A DNA stretch of 64,000 nt. It comes from Trichosphaerium sp. ATCC 40318. Its lineage: Eukaryota > Protista > Tubulinea. Of the stretch, positions 17,100 to 35,107 are shown one piece after another (the stretch's first letter is position 1; every line of letters starts with the position of its first letter). The translations under genes were made by a program, and so were the position numbers. The stretch lies in NCBI GenBank assembly GCA_038496445.1, contig JALMLS010000455.1, positions 682,001 through 746,000 on the forward strand. Direction: 5' to 3'. The notes beneath the pieces are model-generated. The model had not been told where the DNA came from. It ran no database searches and saw nothing but the letters and a program-made list of their open reading frames with translations.

Positions 17100-17682
17100 T
17101 AATTTTGCTAGAAATAATAAAAACATAAAATTGTATTGTTAAATTGACGGTTGGTTGGCACGTGCGAGGACAATTGAATGTGTGAAAAGAATCTTCATCA
17201 CTTTAAAACACGTACTTTCGCGGTAAACACTTGAAAGTATTGGTAACAGCGTAGGAAGTAGTTTAACAAGAGGAGATAGTTCCTGTGTTTTATGGATCCT
17301 TCATTCGTTTTGGGTTAACTTGACTACACTAGTAGGTAACGAAGAAAGAAGTACAGAGCATTAGAATCTCGGTGCTATTACGTGGCCTGCCTTAATTGAT
17401 TAGTTGTGTACACAAAAACAATACTAGCAAGTCTGTAAACGTCCCCGAATTTCTCTCTTCCATTCCTAATAATCAAGTCGCCTGTATTTAGTATCCTCGT
17501 TTTAACTCCTCGGGGCTCATCAAAAACTATTATTGTACGCTACACCCTTTAATTTTATTAGTCGTTAATTTTGCTAGCCACACGAAAGCTTCTTGATTGA
17601 TACACGTGATATTTGAAGGTAAGCACACTTCCGCCAAAAAAACCTCCCTTAGGAACTTTGTTTACAATTATTTTAGATCAAA

Positions 17683-20600
17683 ATGACTCTACTACGCTTC
17701 GTATGTATAGTGTTATTTATTACCATACATCACGTAATACACGGGAACGACTGTGATTGCGTATCAAGAGAAAATGTTCGTGTAGGCGCTATTATTCCCC
17801 ATGAGAACGCAAACTATCATCCAGCGTTTTGGGAGCAAATTCAACTGGGAATGAAACAAGCTGCAAGAGATCTTAAGATACAACTAGAAATTAGAGTACT
17901 TAACATCTTCGACTCATTAAATGGCGTTGCTGCGGCTCAAACAGAGGCTGTAAATGAGATCTTATCAATCAACGTAAGTATCAATTTTCTTTTTTTTTTT
18001 TTCTGAAAATTACGCACACCCTCGTCACGGTGGTACTATTTCGTTGTTGTATAGTATGAAGCCCATGTGGTTGCAAGTTGCTACACTTGAAAATTCGTCA
18101 TCAAACGACTTGGCGTTACAACATCGTATTTTTTTTTCATCACGTGCTTAGGTTGATGGATTGATTATTTCAACGAGTGTAGCATTGACAGAGGTAAAAA
18201 ATCAACTACAAGCATCAGAAATGAAAAACATACCAGTCATCGGCATAGCAAGCGATAGGAGCCATATGGCAGAACTCAACAATAGTAACACTCTGCTTAC
18301 TTTATTCGGATCAGAAGCCATAAAAGCTGGCAGTCTTGCTGCTCAAAACCTTGCTTCAAGGATAAATGGAGTACAAAATAAGACACTTATATGTATAAAC
18401 CATAGACAAAACCAACAGTTATTCAATCTACACTGTGATGGGTTCAAGGATTATTGTCAAAATGCGAATATTTCATCGCAAGTTTTATCGTATTTGGATT
18501 CCAGTTCACTTCGTGAATCGAATATCAAAGAATTTCTTGATAATCTTGATACACTTGCTGGTGTTTTTACACTGTCTCCTGATATTGCTTCGTTTATTGA
18601 TACTATTGTACCTCAAGGAAGAGATATACTTTTATCTACGGCAGGGTTCAACGATGATGTTTGGAGATTGTTGGAGAAGAAAAGATTGTCGTTTATTGTT
18701 AGTCAACAGGTGCGTTTTTTTAGAAATAAACTGTTAAGCTTTCAAGTGTTCACTCTTGTTATAGCCGTATTATCAAGGTTATATGTCTCTTGTGTACATG
18801 AGTACATTTCTGACGAGATATCAAGTACCTTCAATGCCATTCACGACAACAGGACCAGTCGTTGTAGACACTATTAAGAACGTCACAAAGTTGGTACGAA
18901 AAATAAAAAACTCGAGTGATTTTTTTATTGACACTTTCTTTGCCATAGGGAACTCAACGTTTTGGTACAATATCTCATCGTAACTCTGCTACATCTTCTT
19001 TTTGGAGTACAGTATGGAAAGGTAGGTTAATTAGTTTATGGAAGTGAGCAACAACACGTGAAACTTAGTGTTTTTCATTTGTTCACAAACAACTATTTAA
19101 TTGTACCCTTATTTATTTTTCTACAGGTGTTAATCAAGCCGTCTCTGAACTAGACATTGAAAACGATTTGGCGTTTCTTGAAGATACTACTTTCAGTGCT
19201 GATCCATTTGAGTCTATTAAAAAATGGTCCGTTCAAAATATCGTTGTTGAACTAGTTTTCTTAATTGATATTGTTGTCATTGTTGAGGTCTTACTATTGA
19301 TTTAGGCTAGATATATTTGAAAAAAACGATACTATTGATGCTATTCATCTTACACTGGCTTATGATTTACATAATACGTCCGAGTACATTAAAGCACATG
19401 CCAAAAAACCAATAATTTCGTATAATTCTGGATATGAGATTTCTGCTCTCCATGATGTCGTTACTCATGTACGTCCTTACACATTAATTTGGTGACACTA
19501 TTTTTGTTCGAATAAATAGTTCATTTACAAACATGCAGGTTGGGCAAGACGAATACCTTGCTGGGTATCTTTCCGGAAAACGGTTTTACAATTACGGTGT
19601 ACGAAAAGCGCTTTGTGTTACAAAGCCTGATACACCAATCATTCGTTGTGATGGCTTCAGAGACGGTTTTATGTCACTAGGTGGTACAGTAGAGGATAAA
19701 AATAACGGTCGGTACACAACAGTAACAGTAGCACAAATTGAAGATTCGGCTATTCAAATAGCAGATGCCCTTTCAAGGTTTTCAATTAATGGAATCATGG
19801 CGAGTTCGAATAGCATAGTAGGGGGTACGTAGGTATGGTTTATTTGTACTGATGCATTAAAATAGCTATTGAGTTGGGAATGGAGAGAACGAATCTCACC
19901 CATGACGATATATTTCTTGGTACTTATGATTTGAATGAAGAATCAATTGGAAGACTTAACAGAGGAGAACTTAAGTTTACTGTTCTACAGCAATCTTTCT
20001 TACAAGGTTATCTACCTCAGTATATGTTATCAGTACTACAGAGGGTAGGAAACTACACTTTAGATAAGATAACTCTAAGTGGACCGAGTTTTGCTACAAA
20101 GGTAAAGTTGTCATTTGTTCTTGTTTTTTTCTCACTTCTTTGGATTCGTAGGACAATGTTGATGTACGTTTGAACCCACATTGATTATTACTTCAAAATA
20201 TAGTGCATTAATTAATAATATTCAAGTCACGAAGATGCGAAAATACAGACGTTTGTGTTGGGTCTAATAGCGAACAATCATTTTTGCTTGTGAGCGACAA
20301 AGAACAAATTGTATGCTTTTTGTAAAACGATAGCATTCTCTTTCTCATATTTGTCTTTACAGGTTGCTCAAGGTGTTGTACTTGCAAATATAACTAGATT
20401 CACACTGTTAGATGATATTAAAAGGTCAGGGAAAGTAGTAGTAACTGATGCATGTGAAGATATACCATACTCAAAAGGTGCTACCTTTTTCTGATTTGAG
20501 TTCACTGACTCTTTTCATTCAAGGTCAAATTGTTGTATCTCGTTTTGAAGGATGCTTTATATCAACAAAAGCTGCACACGCCCAAGGATCTGGAGCTTCC

Positions 20601-22458
20601 GCTTTAATAATAGTAATGCCTGAGTTATTTGAGCCAGTTGTATTTGTAAACAAGAGTGACAAAGGTTCGCTTGACATCCCAGTTCTTGTTGTAGGAGGAA
20701 ACTTCAGAGGTCAAATGCTTAGTCTGGTATGCTTGTTTTTACTTCCTAAACGATTCTCACTCTTCAATGTAGAATGGAGCACAACTATCAATACTGCAAA
20801 ATCTAGGTGCGTGAATATTGTCTCGTAAAGTCTAAACTGTGTACAGAGCTTCAAAAACTTAATAATGCTGCACGACTTGTTTTTGTTGCTTTGGCTGGGT
20901 TTGCTATTTGTTTATGTTGCTTGCTTGGAGTGTATGTTGTACTACAACGAAAACTCCCACAAATAAGAGCATCTAGCTATATATTCCTGTTACTTCTAAT
21001 CTTGGGTAAGTCCAAAAAGAAAGCTGAGATGTACTGGTACCTTTTTTTTGGTTTGACTTCGCTTTCAGGTGCTGTTCTATGTTTTGCTTCTATTTTTGCT
21101 TGGGCTTATCCTACAGGTGATCCTACTACTGTAAGTTGTATTCTTCGTCCATGGCTTATCAATATTGGGTTCACGTTGCTCTATGGGTACAAATGTCCTC
21201 TTTGATTTTTTCTAAGTTAAGTTTTCTTTGTAGGTCACTCTTCCTTAAGACATTCCGGATTTGGAGAATATTCAGGAACAAAGTTCTAAGTGCTGAAGTT
21301 ATTCTTGATTCGCATCTTATATTTTATTTATCAGCTTTCTTGGCTGTAGATATTGTATCCAATTTGTCGTTGATTTTTACTTTTTTTTTTTGTTGTTCAC
21401 TTTTCTTGACATTCTTTGATCATATTACTTGTACTGTCTATTATGCATACACCTAAACCGAAGACATACGAACTTTACGTGCAGTGTTCAATAGAATTCC
21501 CATATTTTTTGGCTATGGTACTCACCAAGGTATGAACTGAAACAAGAGAAACATTTCTGACTTTTTTCTTAGGGTTTACTACTCTTATTTGGTGTATTTC
21601 TCGCTGTCAGTACTAGAAAAGTGATATCAGCTTATAACGAAAGTAGATTCATAGGATTTTCTGTACGTTTAGGTCTTACAAAATGAGAGAAGAAAAAAAC
21701 TAATCTATTTGTTATTTTTTTAGATTTATAGTGTAAGCTTTATTGCAGCTGTAATAGTTCCCATCTATGCAGTGAATCTAAGTCTGACATCTCAGTATGT
21801 GTTGTATTCAGCAGGGGTTATTGGTACGTTTTGTAACACGTGCCTGTTTGTCTTTTGTTCGAGACTAACTTTTTTTTAGTTTCAACGGTTGTTACAGTAT
21901 GTCTTTTTAGTACTACCTTAGCACGTGATCTCCAGTTAACTTTTTCTTTGTAGATGGTTCTAATATTCGCGCCTAAAATAAGATCAATAGAAAGGTACTT
22001 GGCCACATTACGAGTTTCATGATACACTGTAAAACTGTTGTCTACCATCCTTTGAAACATTGTTTACCTTCATATCTCCATTGTATCTAACTTTCTTTAC
22101 AGAGGTGATAAATTAACTAGACAAGATGTAGCAAGACAAATGATGGAACGAGCCCAAAGAAAGGATCCGAGCACTCTTAACTCTACAACAACTAGCACGT
22201 TTTAAACAAAGCATAAAGGGCTTCAACTTACTTGCTTCTTTAGGTTTTATTGGAGAGGTGTCTACTATGAAGGATTTGGAGTCAAGATACAAGAAGAAGC
22301 TGGCAGCTAAGGAGCAAGAGATCGCTGCATTGAAACAGAAGTTGAGAGCATTAGAAAACCCAAAAGAAAAAGAGGAGTCTACTACTAAATCTCAAGCGGT
22401 TGTGACTCCAAAAAAACAGTCATCATCTTCCTCTTCAAAAGAGGAGGAAACTAGCTAA
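17683..22458 (+). CDS. Class C (GABA-B-like) GPCR with two periplasmic sugar-binding-type domains, a PA domain, 7TM and C-terminal coiled coil
   Basis: Signal peptide; two PBP1 modules (FWEQIQLGMKQAA..SQQPYYQGY; VGQDEYLAGY..QQSFLQGY); PA motif (DAC..GQIVV.RF.GC....KAAHAQGSGASALII..IPVLVV); 7tm_3 motifs IRASS, CILRPWL..GFTLLYGSLFLKTFRIWRIF, NESRFIG, FAPK. Confidence 0.9.
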
Positions 22459-23197: not shown

Positions 23198-26100
23198 ATG
23201 GCCCAAATTAAATCCGCTCGTGGTGATGATCTTTTGGTGTTTAGTAAGTGGGTTTTTTTTGAAGTTGTCATGAATGAGTCGTTTTTTAGGAAACATATTC
23301 ACTCTGGATGAGGCTTGTTTTTACAAAGGGACTTTAAAAAATGGTATCAGACATGGCAAAGGCGAAATGACATGGTACTTTGATAACGATGTTACTGGTA
23401 AGAGAGTGTTTTTGTGATGATTACCAAAAATACTTAGGCTATAAGAATGGTAGCAAATACATTGGCGACTTTGTGGATGGCAAAATGACAGGAAAAGGAG
23501 AGCTTTATTCGCCAGATGGTACCAAATACATTGGCGACCTTGTGGATGATAAGTTAACAGGGAAAGGAGAGCTTTATTGGCCAGATGGTAGAAAATACAT
23601 CGGTGACTTTGTGGATGGCAAAATGACAGGAAAAGGAGAGCATTGTTGGCTAGATGGTAACAAATACATCGGTGACTTTGTGGATGGCAAGAGAACAGGA
23701 AAAGGAGAGCATTGTTGGCCAGATGGTAACAAATACATCGGTGACTTTGTGGATGGCAAGAGTACAGGAAAAGGAGAGCTTTATTCGCCAGATGGTAGCA
23801 AATACATTGGCGACTTTGTGGATGGCAAGAGAACAGGGAAAGGAGAGCTTTGTTCGCCAGATGGTAGCAAATACATTGGCGACTTTGTGAATGACTATAT
23901 GGCAGGAAAAGGAGAGCTTTATTCGCCAGATGGTAGCAAATACGTTGGTAACTTTGTGTATGGCAAGAGAACAGGAAAAGGAGAGCTTTATTTGCCAAAT
24001 GGTACCAAATACATTGGTAACTTTGTGGGTGAGCAGTTTCTTAATTCGGCAGCTACCAAGATTTCTGGAGAACCCAATCAACACGCCTTTTTCAAAATGG
24101 CAATAATTTGCACCAAAAGTACATCCGCGGCCATTGAAGATGTTTTTGTATTTTCAGAAGATACAAAGTACTTCAAGAAGCTGAATGATTGGTTTATAGC
24201 TCCCACATTTATTACTTTACCTCAAAAAGACAGTTTCGAAATATTGTGTCAGAAATCCTTAATTTTTGAGATCAGTTCCAAAAAGACATTCACAGGATTT
24301 GTTAAACAGATAAGACTACACAAAGATGAAAACAATAGGTTGTGCGATGTGGTATTTGTTTATGATCTTTGTTTACGTGACCCTGAGATATCATTACATC
24401 AAGGTACATACCAACAACATATTTAACTGTGTGCTGATATTAATAATTTAGTTACAACTATAGCACGTGAGATTCCAGGGGCACGTGTGATACCAATAAA
24501 GATACGTGACATAACAAAAGAACAATTTCAAGGTGAATATTACGGATCATTGTCCCCTCAAAAACCATCAATTGCTTCTGGTATGAATCACACAGAATAC
24601 GAATACATAAAGCAACTGAAAGCAAAATTGTTGGTTGTGGGTCATGGAGGAGCAGGTATGCTCAAGCAATATGAGTTTCTTCAAATTAACGCAATATTAG
24701 GAAAGACAACTTTAGTAAAGACGTTGTCAGGTGAAAAAGATGAGAGTGTTGATTCAACAGTTGGCTTTGATACCTCTTCTCTATTGTATGTTTGTTCGAT
24801 ATTCTATATGAGATGTAACACTAACACATGTAGATATGGTAATTTATCATTCACTGTTTTAGACTTTGCTGGACAGATGGAATACAAAGGGCTTCATAAG
24901 TATTTTTTCGCCAAACAACTTGCCATTTACATCATAGTTGTAAGATCCTAAGACCACGTGAACAAACATTTTCTTATCTATTCTTTTTAGATTGACTTAT
25001 CACTATCAATTACAGAGCAGAAAGAGCACCTTAAGCACTGGGTTCATACCCTTAGTAAGTTTTTGAAAGGACAAGATGCGACATACTACTCAGTGATTGT
25101 ATATGGATCCAAGTCGGATATCCATTCAGGAGACTTAGAAGCCAATAAAAAAGAGCTACACTCCTTCCGGATGAAATCGTCAGTGTACCTTGTGTTTTGC
25201 TTAGATGGTACTCATGTTTTAACTAAGCAAGTTTTCTAATGTTGTTTCAAAAGGTATAGCTGGTCTTGAAAAGAAATTGAAGCGTCAAGCAAAATACATG
25301 AAGTCACAGTACCCAAAAGTACCAACTCTATACGACAAAGTACAAAAAGCATTAAAGAAAGCAGTTGTGAAAAAAGATAGATTGAAGGATAACATCATAT
25401 CATTGTACGTTAATTACTTTTTCAGAAACACTGATAATTAACATGAAAATAGTGAAGACGTCACTCAACTGTTACCTGAGACTATTAAAATGGCTCCTAT
25501 TGAGTTGGTTGCCTCGTTAAATTACCTTCACTCTATTGGTAGCATTATGTTTGATGAGGTACTTCTGCTTGCCTAAAACCTTTTCTGTGAGTTTGAACTC
25601 GATTTAATTATCCCTATAGTCATCGTACATGTTGTGTTTAGACCCTCCCATTCTATCTCGTATTATGAGTGTCTTTATTGCTCCTACAGAACACCTGAAC
25701 AGATTATTGAATGGAAATTCTCGGAATCACTGCGCTGTGTTCACTTATGCAGAGGCCCATTACCGCATCTCAAAGGTATTCAAACAGTGTACAATGGTTG
25801 AAGTGAAGCAAGTGATGAGATTCTTGGTTAAATTGTCATTTTGTGTTCGCTTGACAAGAGAAGAAAAGGTAGCACTTTGTAACATGTTTTTATTGGTACA
25901 TTATTTACTTACTGTGGTTAGAAAGTATACGGCTCAGATGGATACATCATAATTTCATTATTGCCAAAAGCTGATATGTTGTACTTTCCACCTGTGACGG
26001 AAAAGGAGGCCAGTATCGATCTAGTTAAACGCAGAAAGGAGGAATTATCCATATTTTCTGACGTGTTTTACTTGAACAAGTTGCCAACAAAGTGGAGGTT

Positions 26101-28581
26101 GCTATCAATTATACCTAAGAGAGATGATAAATTTGAGATCAAGACGATTAAAACGATCAAGAAAAATGCAAATACGCAAAAAATAGTACGTTTAGAAACA
26201 CGTGTTCATTCAGTTCTGTTTTTTTTTCTCAATTTTTTCTTTGCTTTCTATGTTTATTGTTTTTGCTGTTAAACAACTTTTAGTCACTTCCCAACAAATA
26301 TGAGCACATATCAACCGTTTCAAAGTTCTTGGCTTATCAATTTACTTCCCCAGAAATATCAATAGATGTGTTTAATAACTTGCAAACAAGATTAAGAGGT
26401 GAGAACCAAAATAACATTTTATTTATGTTAACAAAATATCTAGAGTTCCAAAACAAAGACTTCCGCCTGTTTTCAAATCTGATAGTATTGGATGACTTGT
26501 ACGGCAACACAATTGTGCTGTACTATAATAGCCATGCGGTAAATATTGTCATTAGAGGCAAGGTGCCGTGGCTATGGAAGGTACGATAATAGTTAAGTAT
26601 TGCAAAAATTCATATATTTTAGAAATGTATTGGATCATACGTAGCACCGTTGGAAGGTAACCAAGTTCAACTATGCCCTGTTAGCATTCAAAACGGCCAC
26701 ATTGTTGTAGCTACACAACCTCCATATAAGTTTGACCAAACAGGTAACCACAATGTGAAGTCAACTATACTTAAATCTGATAGGAGATATTGTCACAGCA
26801 TCTCACTTGAAAGAGGGCTTTCCTGTACTGCCAATAAGCCAAAATACCTTTTGGAGCAGTCTTCATGGTGAAAAATTCTTGCGACAAGGCGATTGGAAAG
26901 AAAACAAGAAAAAGTATCCGGGTTTGAGATGGACGTCTCTCACAAGCAACGAAACAGCCAAAGTATGTGTAACACTTGTTCCAGTTTGTTATTTAATCTT
27001 TGGTAACTAAATCCAAAAAGGAGCGTTATGATGAGTACTTGAGAGCTCGCAATATGTTCTACAAGTTTATGGGTACTGAGAGTGAGTCGTTCTTTAAACT
27101 TGAAAAGATTGTATTCTTTGACAATCAAACGCTTGAAGCTGCATTCCAAAAAAAATATGAACATCTCGTTTCTAAAGTACTTCAATCTAAATCTTCAGGT
27201 AAGTGATTTGAACATTTGGTGGCAATTCTTATTAATCCCATTTAGATATTAGAGCTAGCAGTGCTGTTGATAAAAATATTCTTGAAGCACAAGAACGTAC
27301 AATGAACCATTTGAAAAACTACACTCTTCGTGTTTCTTGTAATGAGCAAATCAATCTCATTGGTGGGTTTCACGGAACAACAGAGGTATTCTCCTCTTAT
27401 TAAGTATTCTACTAATACGCATACATAGGACATCAGTTTTTCAATTGCGACCAACAACTTCAGAGAGCCAACCAAGTCAAAAAGCAAGAAAGATGAAGGA
27501 TTCTTTGGTACAAATACCTAAGCTTTCAATGTGTACTTGTCTAACTTACTGTGTTACAAAGGGAATGGTATCTACTTCACACAATACCCAGACTATGGTA
27601 CGTGTCTATAGTCATGTGCTTAGAGTTAATAGAGCTGTTGTAGGAAAGGTGTATGCGGAGTGGAAGAAGACTGATACTCCTTGTATGTTGATATCATGGG
27701 TGATGATGGGAAAACCCTATCCGGCTACTGAGGTTCCTAACCCTCGAGATCCAAACAGTCTCTATGGAAAACCATGCAAGGTAATCAATTGAAATTACCC
27801 ATTAATTCATTAATTAGGCTAACAACGTAAAAATAGGATGGATACGATTCACACTATGCTATTGTAAAAAAAACAACAGATGCTCGCAATTGTTATCCTT
27901 GTAAAAAACATGAAAAACCAGACTTTGATGAGATTGTTGTATTCTCTAACAAACAAGTACGAACCTGACATTCTGTTAATAATCCTACAGGCGGGTTCTT
28001 CTAACTTTCTTTTCAATAGATTCTTCCGAGATACCTTGTTTATTACCAAAGCACAAATACTATTACTCCATCACAGTTCAACATCAAGTACAGAGATGCA
28101 AAGAGTCTCATCTTATGGGTTGATGATAACTTATCCAGGGAGAACAAAGATATTGTGAAGCTATTAAAAGCTCGGCCAAAGAAAACAGAGGCACGACAAA
28201 ATAGAATATGTTGAAGGGTACTACTAACCTCCAAAGGTTTTGGAAATGATGTCATCCTCAGAGGTTTTGGGATGGCTCCAAAAGTTTAAAGGATATAGTA
28301 ACAATAGGCTACGTATTGTAACAAACAGATACCGTAAAGGTGATGGAGATGAGAATGCAGCAGAGCACTTGGTAAAAAGTATAATTAAGCACAATAAGAA
28401 ATGGAGTAAAATACCTATTCTTGTGTTTTGTGGTACGCGTGTCACAACAACAATCGATTGCATTGAAGTTAAACATGCTCATATTTTGAATCTAGGAAAC
28501 AAATCAAGTGTCAAGTACCTCAAAAGGAAATACAGGAATGTTTCAGTCACAGACAATCCTGCAGATGTATTATCCTTGTAA
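23198..28581 (+). CDS. Roco-family protein: MORN repeats - Roc GTPase - COR - PARP/ART catalytic domain - receiver-like domain
   Basis: Roc: KLLVVGHGGAGKTTL, STVG, DFAGQMEY, GSKSD; COR: KVPTLY..LNYLHSIG..LCLDPP.L; ART: GFHGT, GNGIYFT, VMMGKPY, YDSH, DEIVVF..QILPRYLVYY; REC-like: ILWVDDN..RIVTN..PILVFCG. Confidence 0.85.
23449..24030 (+). repeat. Near-identical 69-bp (23-aa) MORN tandem repeats, about 8.5 copies
   Basis: Unit GSKYIGDFVDGKMTGKGELYSPD starting at 23449, 23518, 23587 ... 24001. Confidence 0.95.
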
Positions 28582-28630: not shown

Positions 28631-33823
<5,193 letters not shown>

Positions 33824-34236: not shown

Positions 34237-34338
34237 ATATTAACTATTTCAGAGAAAACTTGTCGTTTAAACTCACCGAAATCAGAATGAAAACAACGCA
34301 GTTTTCATTAATTTCAAAATCATAACGTCATATCACAA

Positions 34339-35107
34339 ATGACAGAGATAACTGTTGCGTTAGATTGGACTCCAAACATTATACATGCAGGGTTTTTTAT
34401 TGCTAAACAACTCAAATGGTTTGAAGAGGAAGGATTGAAAGTTCACCTTTTATCGCCAAAGGAAGACAACTATTCTACAACGCCATTACGTAAGCTCTTG
34501 GATCCTAAGAGAAAAGTAGACTTTGCTTTATCTCCAACAGAAAGCGTAATGTCGTATCAAACTTCTAGAAACCCTCAAGACGTTGTAGCTGTTAGTGCTC
34601 TTCTACAGAAAGACGCAAGCGCAATTGTAACGCTTTCTACAAGTGGTATAGACAAACCTTCAAAACTCGACGGAAAAATCTATGGTAGCTACGCAGCACG
34701 ATTCGAAGACCATATTGTGAAAGAAATGGTAAAGAATGATGGAGGTAGCGGAGAATTAAAGATAACACAACCCAACAAGCTTAAAATATGGGATAACTTT
34801 TTGTCCGGAACAGTTGCTTGCCAATGACCCTCCGAAAGCCATCGAAGCACTCAAGAATTGCGGAGAAGAAGACCTGAAGGACAGTAAACTACTAGAAAGA
34901 GCTGTGGCACACTTGAAGGGTACAATCCTTTTGGACAACGGAACGTGGGGAACGATGGATGCTAACAGGTACTCTAAACAGTCTATGGCGGTGCTAACTA
35001 GGATTAGGTGGAAAGCGTTCGTAGATTGGCTTGTAGAGAAGGGTTTGCTCGAAAAGGATAAGAAACCAGATATCGGTCGCCTGTACACCAACGATTTGTT
35101 AGCGTAA
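34339..35107 (+). pseudogene. NMT1/THI5-like substrate-binding protein gene with internal deletion and frameshift near 34815 (or assembly gap)
   Basis: ALDWTPNIIHAGFFIAK, KLDGKIYGSYAARFED, IWDNFLSG, then a jump to another frame (NDPPKAIEAL..WGTMDANRWKAFVDWL..LYTNDLL); the family's central D-A-T-W..WEG..YSPV segment is absent. Confidence 0.7.

Follow-up and report, generated by a model that had tools for sequence, protein, structure and literature searches.

Can the GTPase switch of a Roco protein be wired to an ADP-ribosyltransferase (ART) instead of a kinase? The question is raised by a locus on the forward strand of a 64,000-nucleotide stretch of DNA from Trichosphaerium sp. ATCC 40318 (contig JALMLS010000455.1, positions 682,001 to 746,000; hereafter the window). 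A preliminary description of this DNA had read positions 23198-28581 as a Roco gene with the architecture MORN-Roc-COR-ART-receiver, resembling an innate-immunity receptor. We find that the domains do follow each other in a single frame: a MORN array, an unassigned linker of ~190 amino acids (aa), Roc, COR, a PARP-type ART with a His-Tyr-Glu (H-Y-E) triad and a domain with a CheY fold. In relatives, Roc and PARP lie within uninterrupted open reading frames (ORFs). The best supported reading is a molecular one: the locus holds a single, intact Roco-family gene whose product is an ADP-ribosyltransferase gated by GTP, a reading to which we assign a probability of about 0.6.

The ORF listing of the unspliced DNA between 23198 and 28581 contains only fragments. 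The stop-free segments of the plus strand encode MORN repeats, the P-loop, DFAGQ, GFHGT and other motifs in shifting frames. One open frame is nevertheless obtainable by splicing. Our manual GT-AG model, checked by script, runs on the plus strand from the ATG at 23198 to the TAA at 28579-28581 and has 23 exons, a coding sequence of 4242 nt, 1413 aa and 0 internal stops. The 22 introns are short (40-98 nt), with GT-AG borders in 21 and GC-AG borders in one. The majority contain an in-frame stop or shift the frame, so that a single frame arises only through splicing and goes well beyond what is expected by chance. Introns 4, 5 and 22 are in frame and without stops, which is why they look partly coding. 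Intron 22 (28433-28495, plus strand, 63 nt) resembles coding sequence in an ORF scan for this reason, and is missing from two related proteins, P0001 and P0002. The limits proposed earlier were retained. The last part of the gene acquired two further introns, at 28191-28236 (GC-AG) and 28433-28495. The 5' end is uncertain: exons 1 and 2 (23198-23243 and 23290-23397, plus strand) were placed by ORF logic alone, and translation may start either at the ATG at 23198, followed by a 46-nt intron, or at an ATG at 23274 that shares the frame of exon 2. An extra in-frame intron of 45 nt in exon 12 (26399-26443) was considered and treated as coding; a relative (L001) has residues there. Six-frame searches with hidden Markov models (HMMs) found no second copy of the gene within the window. 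The GC content of the window (~36%) and its short introns agree with the values of the Trichosphaerium draft genome (GC 37.7%, mean intron 75 bp; PMC10521059).

When the last large exon was used as a query, we retrieved 27 representative relatives. The best was P0001, a peptide of 302 aa from the transcriptome MMETSP0405 of the marine amoebozoan Trichosphaerium sp. ATCC 40318. Exons 16-23 tile this peptide end to end, confirming seven junctions, with 84-100% identity per exon for exons 17-23 (alignment) and 87% for exon 16 (tblastn). P0001 is not identical to the window and is therefore the product of a paralogue or of another strain. It documents expression of the family and splicing as modelled, and the same is predicted for this copy. 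A homology search with P0001 returned three fragments.

We searched the window for domains with single exons or pieces and with profiles rather than with the joined spliced protein. MORN and Roc passed Pfam on the gene's own exons; the ART, COR and the receiver fold were demonstrated via relatives (P0001 and metagenome contigs). The Roc GTPase occupies exons 4-8 (24619..25404, plus strand), as delimited by Pfam, by tblastn matches from relatives and by a family HMM. The Pfam score is 27.1 bits (E 5.2e-6) against a cut-off of 27, for a piece (24427-24948) that includes two read-through introns. The domain had been described as intact, and all its motifs were found: G1 GHGGAG/KT (24640-24708, split by a 45-nt intron at 24656-24700), switch I STVG (24754-24765), G3 DFAGQ (24862-24876) and G4 SKSD (25108-25119), all on the plus strand. 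When searched against PDB sequences, the Roc piece alone gave weak Arf matches only, and single COR exons, like the last exon, had no useful match.

The family HMM, built from the Roc-COR region of six relatives, was more informative. It matches exons 4-12 and 14 of the window in strict profile order, with 37.8 bits for exon 6, 32.4 for exon 10, 21.9 for exon 7 and 12.4 for exon 12. In the PDB, the top match of this profile is LRRK2 (1.8e-20), followed by the Roco protein of C. tepidum (CtRoco), the Methanosarcina Roco and LRRK1; the E-values of Rab proteins are ten orders of magnitude worse than that of LRRK2. On LRRK2 the alignment covers 1330-1610, extending past Roc into COR-A. In the window, the COR-A-like region corresponds to exons 9-11 (25453..26185, plus strand), where exon 10 falls on positions 290-379 of the HMM, and the COR-B-like region to exons 12-13 (26284..26743, plus strand), where exon 12 falls on positions 486-541. 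A putative COR-A directly after Roc is thus indicated by the family HMM, by the alignment to LRRK2 and by Foldseek on a modelled relative. Pfam COR-A remains below threshold in relatives (28.8 and 20.1 bits against 35.3), and COR-B reaches 31.1 bits in L011 (cut-off 27) and a weak 19.7 bits in L001. The COR assignment of the preliminary description stands as an ordered match to the Roc-COR profile of the relatives, with a COR-B that is putative in this copy, while Pfam and the PDB gave no COR match on the window's single exons. We also noticed a zinc-ribbon-like motif (CxxC...C..H) after COR-B in some relatives (L011, L021, L001 and L018). It is degenerate in the window (26623-26743), where the second Cys is lost (C-P-V-S).

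Is the association of Roc-COR with the ART peculiar to this locus? A profile of the ART plus the end domain identified 37 loci in metagenome contigs. One of them (L006) has an uninterrupted ORF of 950 aa with matches to Roc (6.5e-18) and PARP (1e-8). Another (L004, 93-4580) has an ORF of 1496 aa with Ras (2.8e-45), leucine-rich repeats (LRR), Roc, a weak COR-A, the ART and the receiver-like end. In L011 an ORF with Roc, COR-A and COR-B is followed by a PARP ORF, and in L035 an LRR/Roc ORF is followed by a PARP ORF. L021 has an LRR/Roc ORF and, downstream, an ART-like match in an ORF that has no Pfam match. COR-like and ART parts adjoin on one contig in L001 and in L002; in L001 the gap between COR-B and the ART is 26 nt. 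No poly(A) tails, which would have marked them as cDNA, were seen on these contigs. The front repeats are exchanged among relatives, with MORN in the window copy and LRR or Ras plus LRR elsewhere. The Roc-ART combination recurs, on these loci, in uncultured protists. L004 has the peculiarity of two GTPases in a single ORF, an N-terminal one of the Ras family and Roc. A homology search with its ART part returned LRR-PARP proteins and no Roco.

These relatives also bear on whether the locus could consist of two adjacent genes, one encoding MORN-Roc-COR and the other a separate ART. Nothing points in this direction beyond the missing RNA for this copy, and we consider the idea close to refuted. 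Only GT-AG introns of 40-58 nt part the COR exons from the ART exons; the frame runs on across them and meets neither a stop nor a start codon. In relatives, a single ORF includes both parts or, as in L001, the two almost touch.

In the structural model of L006 (AlphaFold2, AF2), Roc, the ART and the last domain are confidently modelled, COR-A is middling and COR-B is poor, with a predicted local distance difference test score (pLDDT) below 50. In Foldseek the top match of this model is LRRK2, with 290-360 aligned columns, and the other top matches are LRRK1 and the catalytic domains of PARPs.

The PARP-type ART spans exons 15-21 (27021..28046, plus strand), as indicated by identity to P0001, by profile and by the six-frame HMM search. 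Its triad was found where it had been reported, with His1135 in GFHGT (27371-27373), Tyr1170 in GNGIYF (27573-27575) and Glu1255 in DEIVVF (27930-27932), all on the plus strand, and it aligns with the triad of PARP2: HMMER places wHGt, GiYF and DEivvF over WHGS, GIYFA and NEYIVY. The ART profile, which includes the window exons among its rows, matches PARP2 (2.4e-7), and also ZAP, PARP12 and PARP4; its six-frame matches in the window follow the order of the profile. In the family alignment, the His is found in 10 of the 12 members covering the site (the other two have Arg), and the Tyr and the Glu are kept in all ART-bearing members covering theirs. Pfam found nothing on the window's single ART exons, which are too short for the domain, nor on the last exon. 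In relatives, Pfam PARP (PF00644) matches P0001 (38 bits, 1.6e-9, cut-off 26.7), P0028 (55 bits) and L006 (35.4 bits). The fold was shown on L006 rather than on the window protein: residues 556-824 of its model superpose on tankyrase and PARP12 with Z 16-17 and a root-mean-square deviation of ~3 Å over 176-192 residues (VIA).

Related ARTs also terminate long receptor-like proteins with LRR and EGF/TSP1 domains, in Copromyxa protea (P0042, P0031) and in environmental eukaryotes (P0033, P0036, L013). ARTs of this clade seem to provide amoebal proteins of the receptor type with a general output domain. We rejected a giant-virus origin of the ART plus receiver-like module, for which no relative was found in IMG/VR. 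MORN is among the commonest domains in the putative viral transfers of the Trichosphaerium genome (PMC10521059).

The protein ends with a receiver-like domain (exons 21-23, 28098..28578, plus strand), identified with the AF2 model of P0001 and Foldseek. In P0001, residues 178-302 are modelled with pLDDT 85-97 in a (beta-alpha)5 layout, and nearly all of the top 40 Foldseek matches are receivers of response regulators (E ~1e-3, TM by target 0.56-0.70). The earlier label of receiver is thus apt for the fold, which is that of CheY-like receivers, but not for the phosphorylation site. The acceptor site after strand 3 has Thr-Asn in place of Asp, a conserved Cys follows strand 4 where Thr/Ser is expected, and strand 5 is followed by Thr-Asp, with no Lys; these positions were placed by sequence and predicted secondary structure rather than by a residue-level structural alignment. 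Pfam Response_reg (PF00072) matches neither the window's last exon nor P0001. On this modelled fold, the end domain is a pseudo-receiver with conserved motifs of its own, LWVD, TNRYR..DG.E.A and CGN, which are read in the window as LWVDD (28113-28127), VTNRYR (28318-28335) and VFCGN (28423-28500), on the plus strand.

This end domain is not restricted to ART proteins, as seen in P0023, P0024 and P0007. It also terminates a RhoGAP protein of Nolandella and a DENN protein, and occurs twice in one Clydonella protein. It looks like a mobile, undescribed amoebal signalling module that has no Pfam family, and its recurrence in RhoGAP, DENN and ART proteins merits its definition as a domain of its own. 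Its nearest look-alikes in the ESM Atlas are rotifer clusters, one of which has an upstream ART of the R-S-E type (PF01129). These predicted structures hint at a recurrent pairing of ARTs with pseudo-receivers.

Within the region encoding the end domain lies intron 21 (28191-28236, plus strand), the single GC-AG intron. Two alternatives were considered at this place: a GT donor at 28155, with the loss of 12 aa in frame, and retention, which leads to a stop at 28212-28214. The GT donor was dropped because P0001 and P0002 show those 12 codons to be coding; at the junction, KKTE runs straight into VL in both. The presence of these codons, just upstream of 28191, in both relatives points to the GC donor, whose use in this copy is predicted. 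One may instead see in the GC replacing the GT, and in the stop met on reading through, signs that this copy is decaying or yields a truncated product while the family is functional. The degenerate motif after COR-B and the lack of an RNA run for the locus would fit such a fate. We regard it as unlikely, since the frame of 1413 codons is open across 22 introns, no catalytic or GTP-binding motif is damaged, and the conservation of the 12 codons with P0001 and P0002 is what one expects if the GC donor is used. GC-AG introns, moreover, form a regular minority among eukaryotic introns.

At the other end of the protein, the MORN array (23322..24042, plus strand; Pfam and Tandem Repeats Finder, TRF) has ~9-10 units and spans intron 2 (23398-23437, plus strand). 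Pfam MORN (PF02493) matches eight stretches in exon 3 (E 1.8e-41) and a further repeat in exon 2 (E 3.8e-5), in line with the estimate of about nine. The units had also been called near-identical, which is borne out by the DNA: TRF finds 8.4 copies of a 69-nt unit (23 residues) at 23447-24028, with 87% matches. Amino-acid variation is found at positions 5-8, 11 and 19-23 of the unit, the other positions being fixed. Pairwise comparison of eight units gave a ratio of non-synonymous to synonymous differences (pN/pS) of 0.89, a pooled value over unit pairs that are not independent. These patterns suggest that the units may vary at their surface. A role of the array as a sensor would be a further step of inference. 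The linker that follows, ~190 aa long (24043..24618, plus strand), comprises the end of exon 3 and the start of exon 4 and is interrupted by the intron between them (24404-24451, plus strand). It matches no Pfam family and has no homologue by protein homology search. Where the window copy has this linker, relatives hold LRRs.

If the locus encodes a GTP-gated ADP-ribosyltransferase, the Roc-COR tandem would work like that of other Roco proteins, as a dimer switch governed by the nucleotide, and its state would control the C-terminal ART. The latter would use NAD+ to ADP-ribosylate the protein itself or target molecules. The MORN array, or the LRRs of the relatives, may position the protein or recognise a partner. 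The receiver-like domain, which cannot be phosphorylated at the usual Asp, probably serves for docking or regulation, given that other amoebae have it at the end of RhoGAP and DENN proteins. Several points weigh against this reading. COR is supported through relatives only, and the modelled COR-B of L006 is of low confidence, as is the ART half of the P0001 model (pLDDT <50), which is unusable. The H-Y-E triad alone proves neither activity nor the choice between mono- and poly-ADP-ribose. The coupling of the GTP state to the ART is assumed from the Roco proteins that bear kinases. No RNA run was listed for the locus, and P0001, at 84-100% identity per exon, comes from another copy or strain. 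Finally, there is one GC donor, and if it were unused the last domain would be lost partly or wholly.

We then compared this architecture with those of known systems. Like LRRK2, LRRK1 and the Dictyostelium Roco kinases, the window protein has Roc followed by COR, repeats before and an enzyme after. In LRRK2-type proteins, however, the output is a kinase with WD40 repeats and the front repeats are ankyrin or LRR, whereas here the output is an ART with a pseudo-receiver and the front repeats are MORN. A review of Roco proteins (2019) distinguishes three domain groups, none with an ART or MORN (PMC6337361). A further parallel is found in bacteria, where LRR-AP-GTPase(Roc)-COR proteins are associated with at least 24 effector domains and were interpreted as conflict systems (Kaur, Iyer, Burroughs and Aravind 2021, PMC8195603). 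The supplementary tables of that study contain 581 entries for COR plus TIR and none for COR plus ART, COR plus PARP or MORN (PMC8195603). These bacterial systems share with the present family the succession of repeats, Roc-COR and a variable C-terminal effector, as well as multiple paralogues with different ends per genome. They differ in being prokaryotic, whereas the gene described here is eukaryotic, spliced and has an additional receiver-like domain. TIR, the commonest effector of the bacterial systems, belongs to a family of domains that in other contexts act on NAD+.

Eukaryotes have non-kinase Roc-COR proteins too. In Aplysia, ROCO domains are found in immune proteins with TIR and Death domains (PMC9334734), and the LRR-ROCOs of brown algae were proposed to be immune receptors (PMC11378527). 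Both resemble the family of the present gene: they are eukaryotic, combine Roc-COR with variable repeats or with immune-type adaptors, and form multi-copy families. Unlike it, they have adaptors (TIR, Death) or no output enzyme, and none has an ART. As for the enzyme, the window ART shares H-Y-E with PARP1-5 and, with the catalytic domains of tankyrase, PARP12 and ZAP (PARP13), a compact ART fold that lacks the helical regulatory domain; but none of tankyrase, PARP12 and ZAP is fused to a GTPase. In its main text, a survey covering over 1900 eukaryotic PARPs mentions no GTPase, LRR or MORN partners (PMC4245714). With NLR/STAND receptors the resemblance is limited to the layout: the switch is here a Ras-like Roc, not NACHT or NB-ARC. 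In the literature searched we found no paper on a Roco-PARP fusion. The novelty claimed for this gene is thus partial. Roc-COR with a non-kinase output was already known, in bacteria (PMC8195603) and in invertebrates (PMC9334734), while this output, this sensor and this eukaryotic setting are new as far as we searched.

What would such an enzyme be for? The tripartite layout of repeats, switch and enzyme invites comparison with NLR-like receptors of immunity or cell death: the repeats would sense an invader, Roc-COR would switch, and the ART would consume NAD+ or modify targets of the host or the invader. The replacement of N-terminal repeats among relatives (MORN, LRR, or Ras plus LRR) and the high similarity of the MORN units, which differ at few positions, are consistent with such a role. 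So are the assignment to conflict systems of the bacterial LRR-Roc-COR proteins, whose effectors include TIR (PMC8195603), and the proposals made for brown-alga ROCOs (PMC11378527). We hold this role to be possible and, being drawn by analogy, no more than tentatively supported. The pN/pS value pools non-independent pairs, the ART module has no viral relatives in IMG/VR, and the end domain is common to RhoGAP and DENN signalling proteins. Expression of Dictyostelium Rocos increases upon starvation and their knock-outs have developmental defects, the review reporting no role in defence (PMC6337361).

The sharing of the end domain with the Nolandella RhoGAP and the DENN proteins fits an ordinary signalling protein, akin to the Dictyostelium Roco kinases, in which MORN tethers the protein to membrane or cytoskeleton and the ART modifies targets of trafficking or of the cytoskeleton. 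MORN repeats are familiar mainly from membrane-bridging or membrane-binding proteins (junctophilins, plant PIP kinases), and the related ARTs at the end of the Copromyxa LRR-EGF/TSP1 proteins would be compatible with a general output domain. On the other hand, lineage-specific multi-copy families with variable repeats are atypical of housekeeping signalling. This role is also tentative, and the immune role is one of two that we deem comparably likely.

A more specific version of the immune role is somewhat more doubtful still. The gene may represent an undescribed class of innate-immune receptors of protists, in which Roc-COR replaces the STAND ATPase and licenses the ART after recognition by fast-changing MORN or LRR repeats, the pseudo-receiver docking or sensing a ligand. 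If this were true, ADP-ribosylation would be a general output of receptors in these lineages, where the same ART ends LRR-EGF receptor-like proteins. If the protein is defensive, the bacterial scheme of joining repeats and Roc-COR to an effector directed at NAD+ would extend to eukaryotes, and amoebae would have a receptor class of their own. Whichever the role, research on Roco proteins has been driven mainly by LRRK2, and how Roc-COR communicates with the output enzyme is a central question of the field. A natural Roco with an ART as output would provide a second, easily assayed read-out of this coupling, and would give the PARP family a member controlled by a GTPase.

Upstream of the gene, on the plus strand, 17677-21453 encodes a class C G-protein-coupled receptor-like protein (7tm_3, 3.7e-12) with a periplasmic-binding-protein-like match (3.6e-7) below the Pfam cut-off. 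Downstream, a multi-exon ABC transporter gene on the minus strand (28634-33446), with matches in two separate ABC_tran parts, ends ~50 nt from the Roco stop codon. An NMT1/THI5-like exon (34312-34824; Pfam 1.7e-21) lies further along, on the plus strand.

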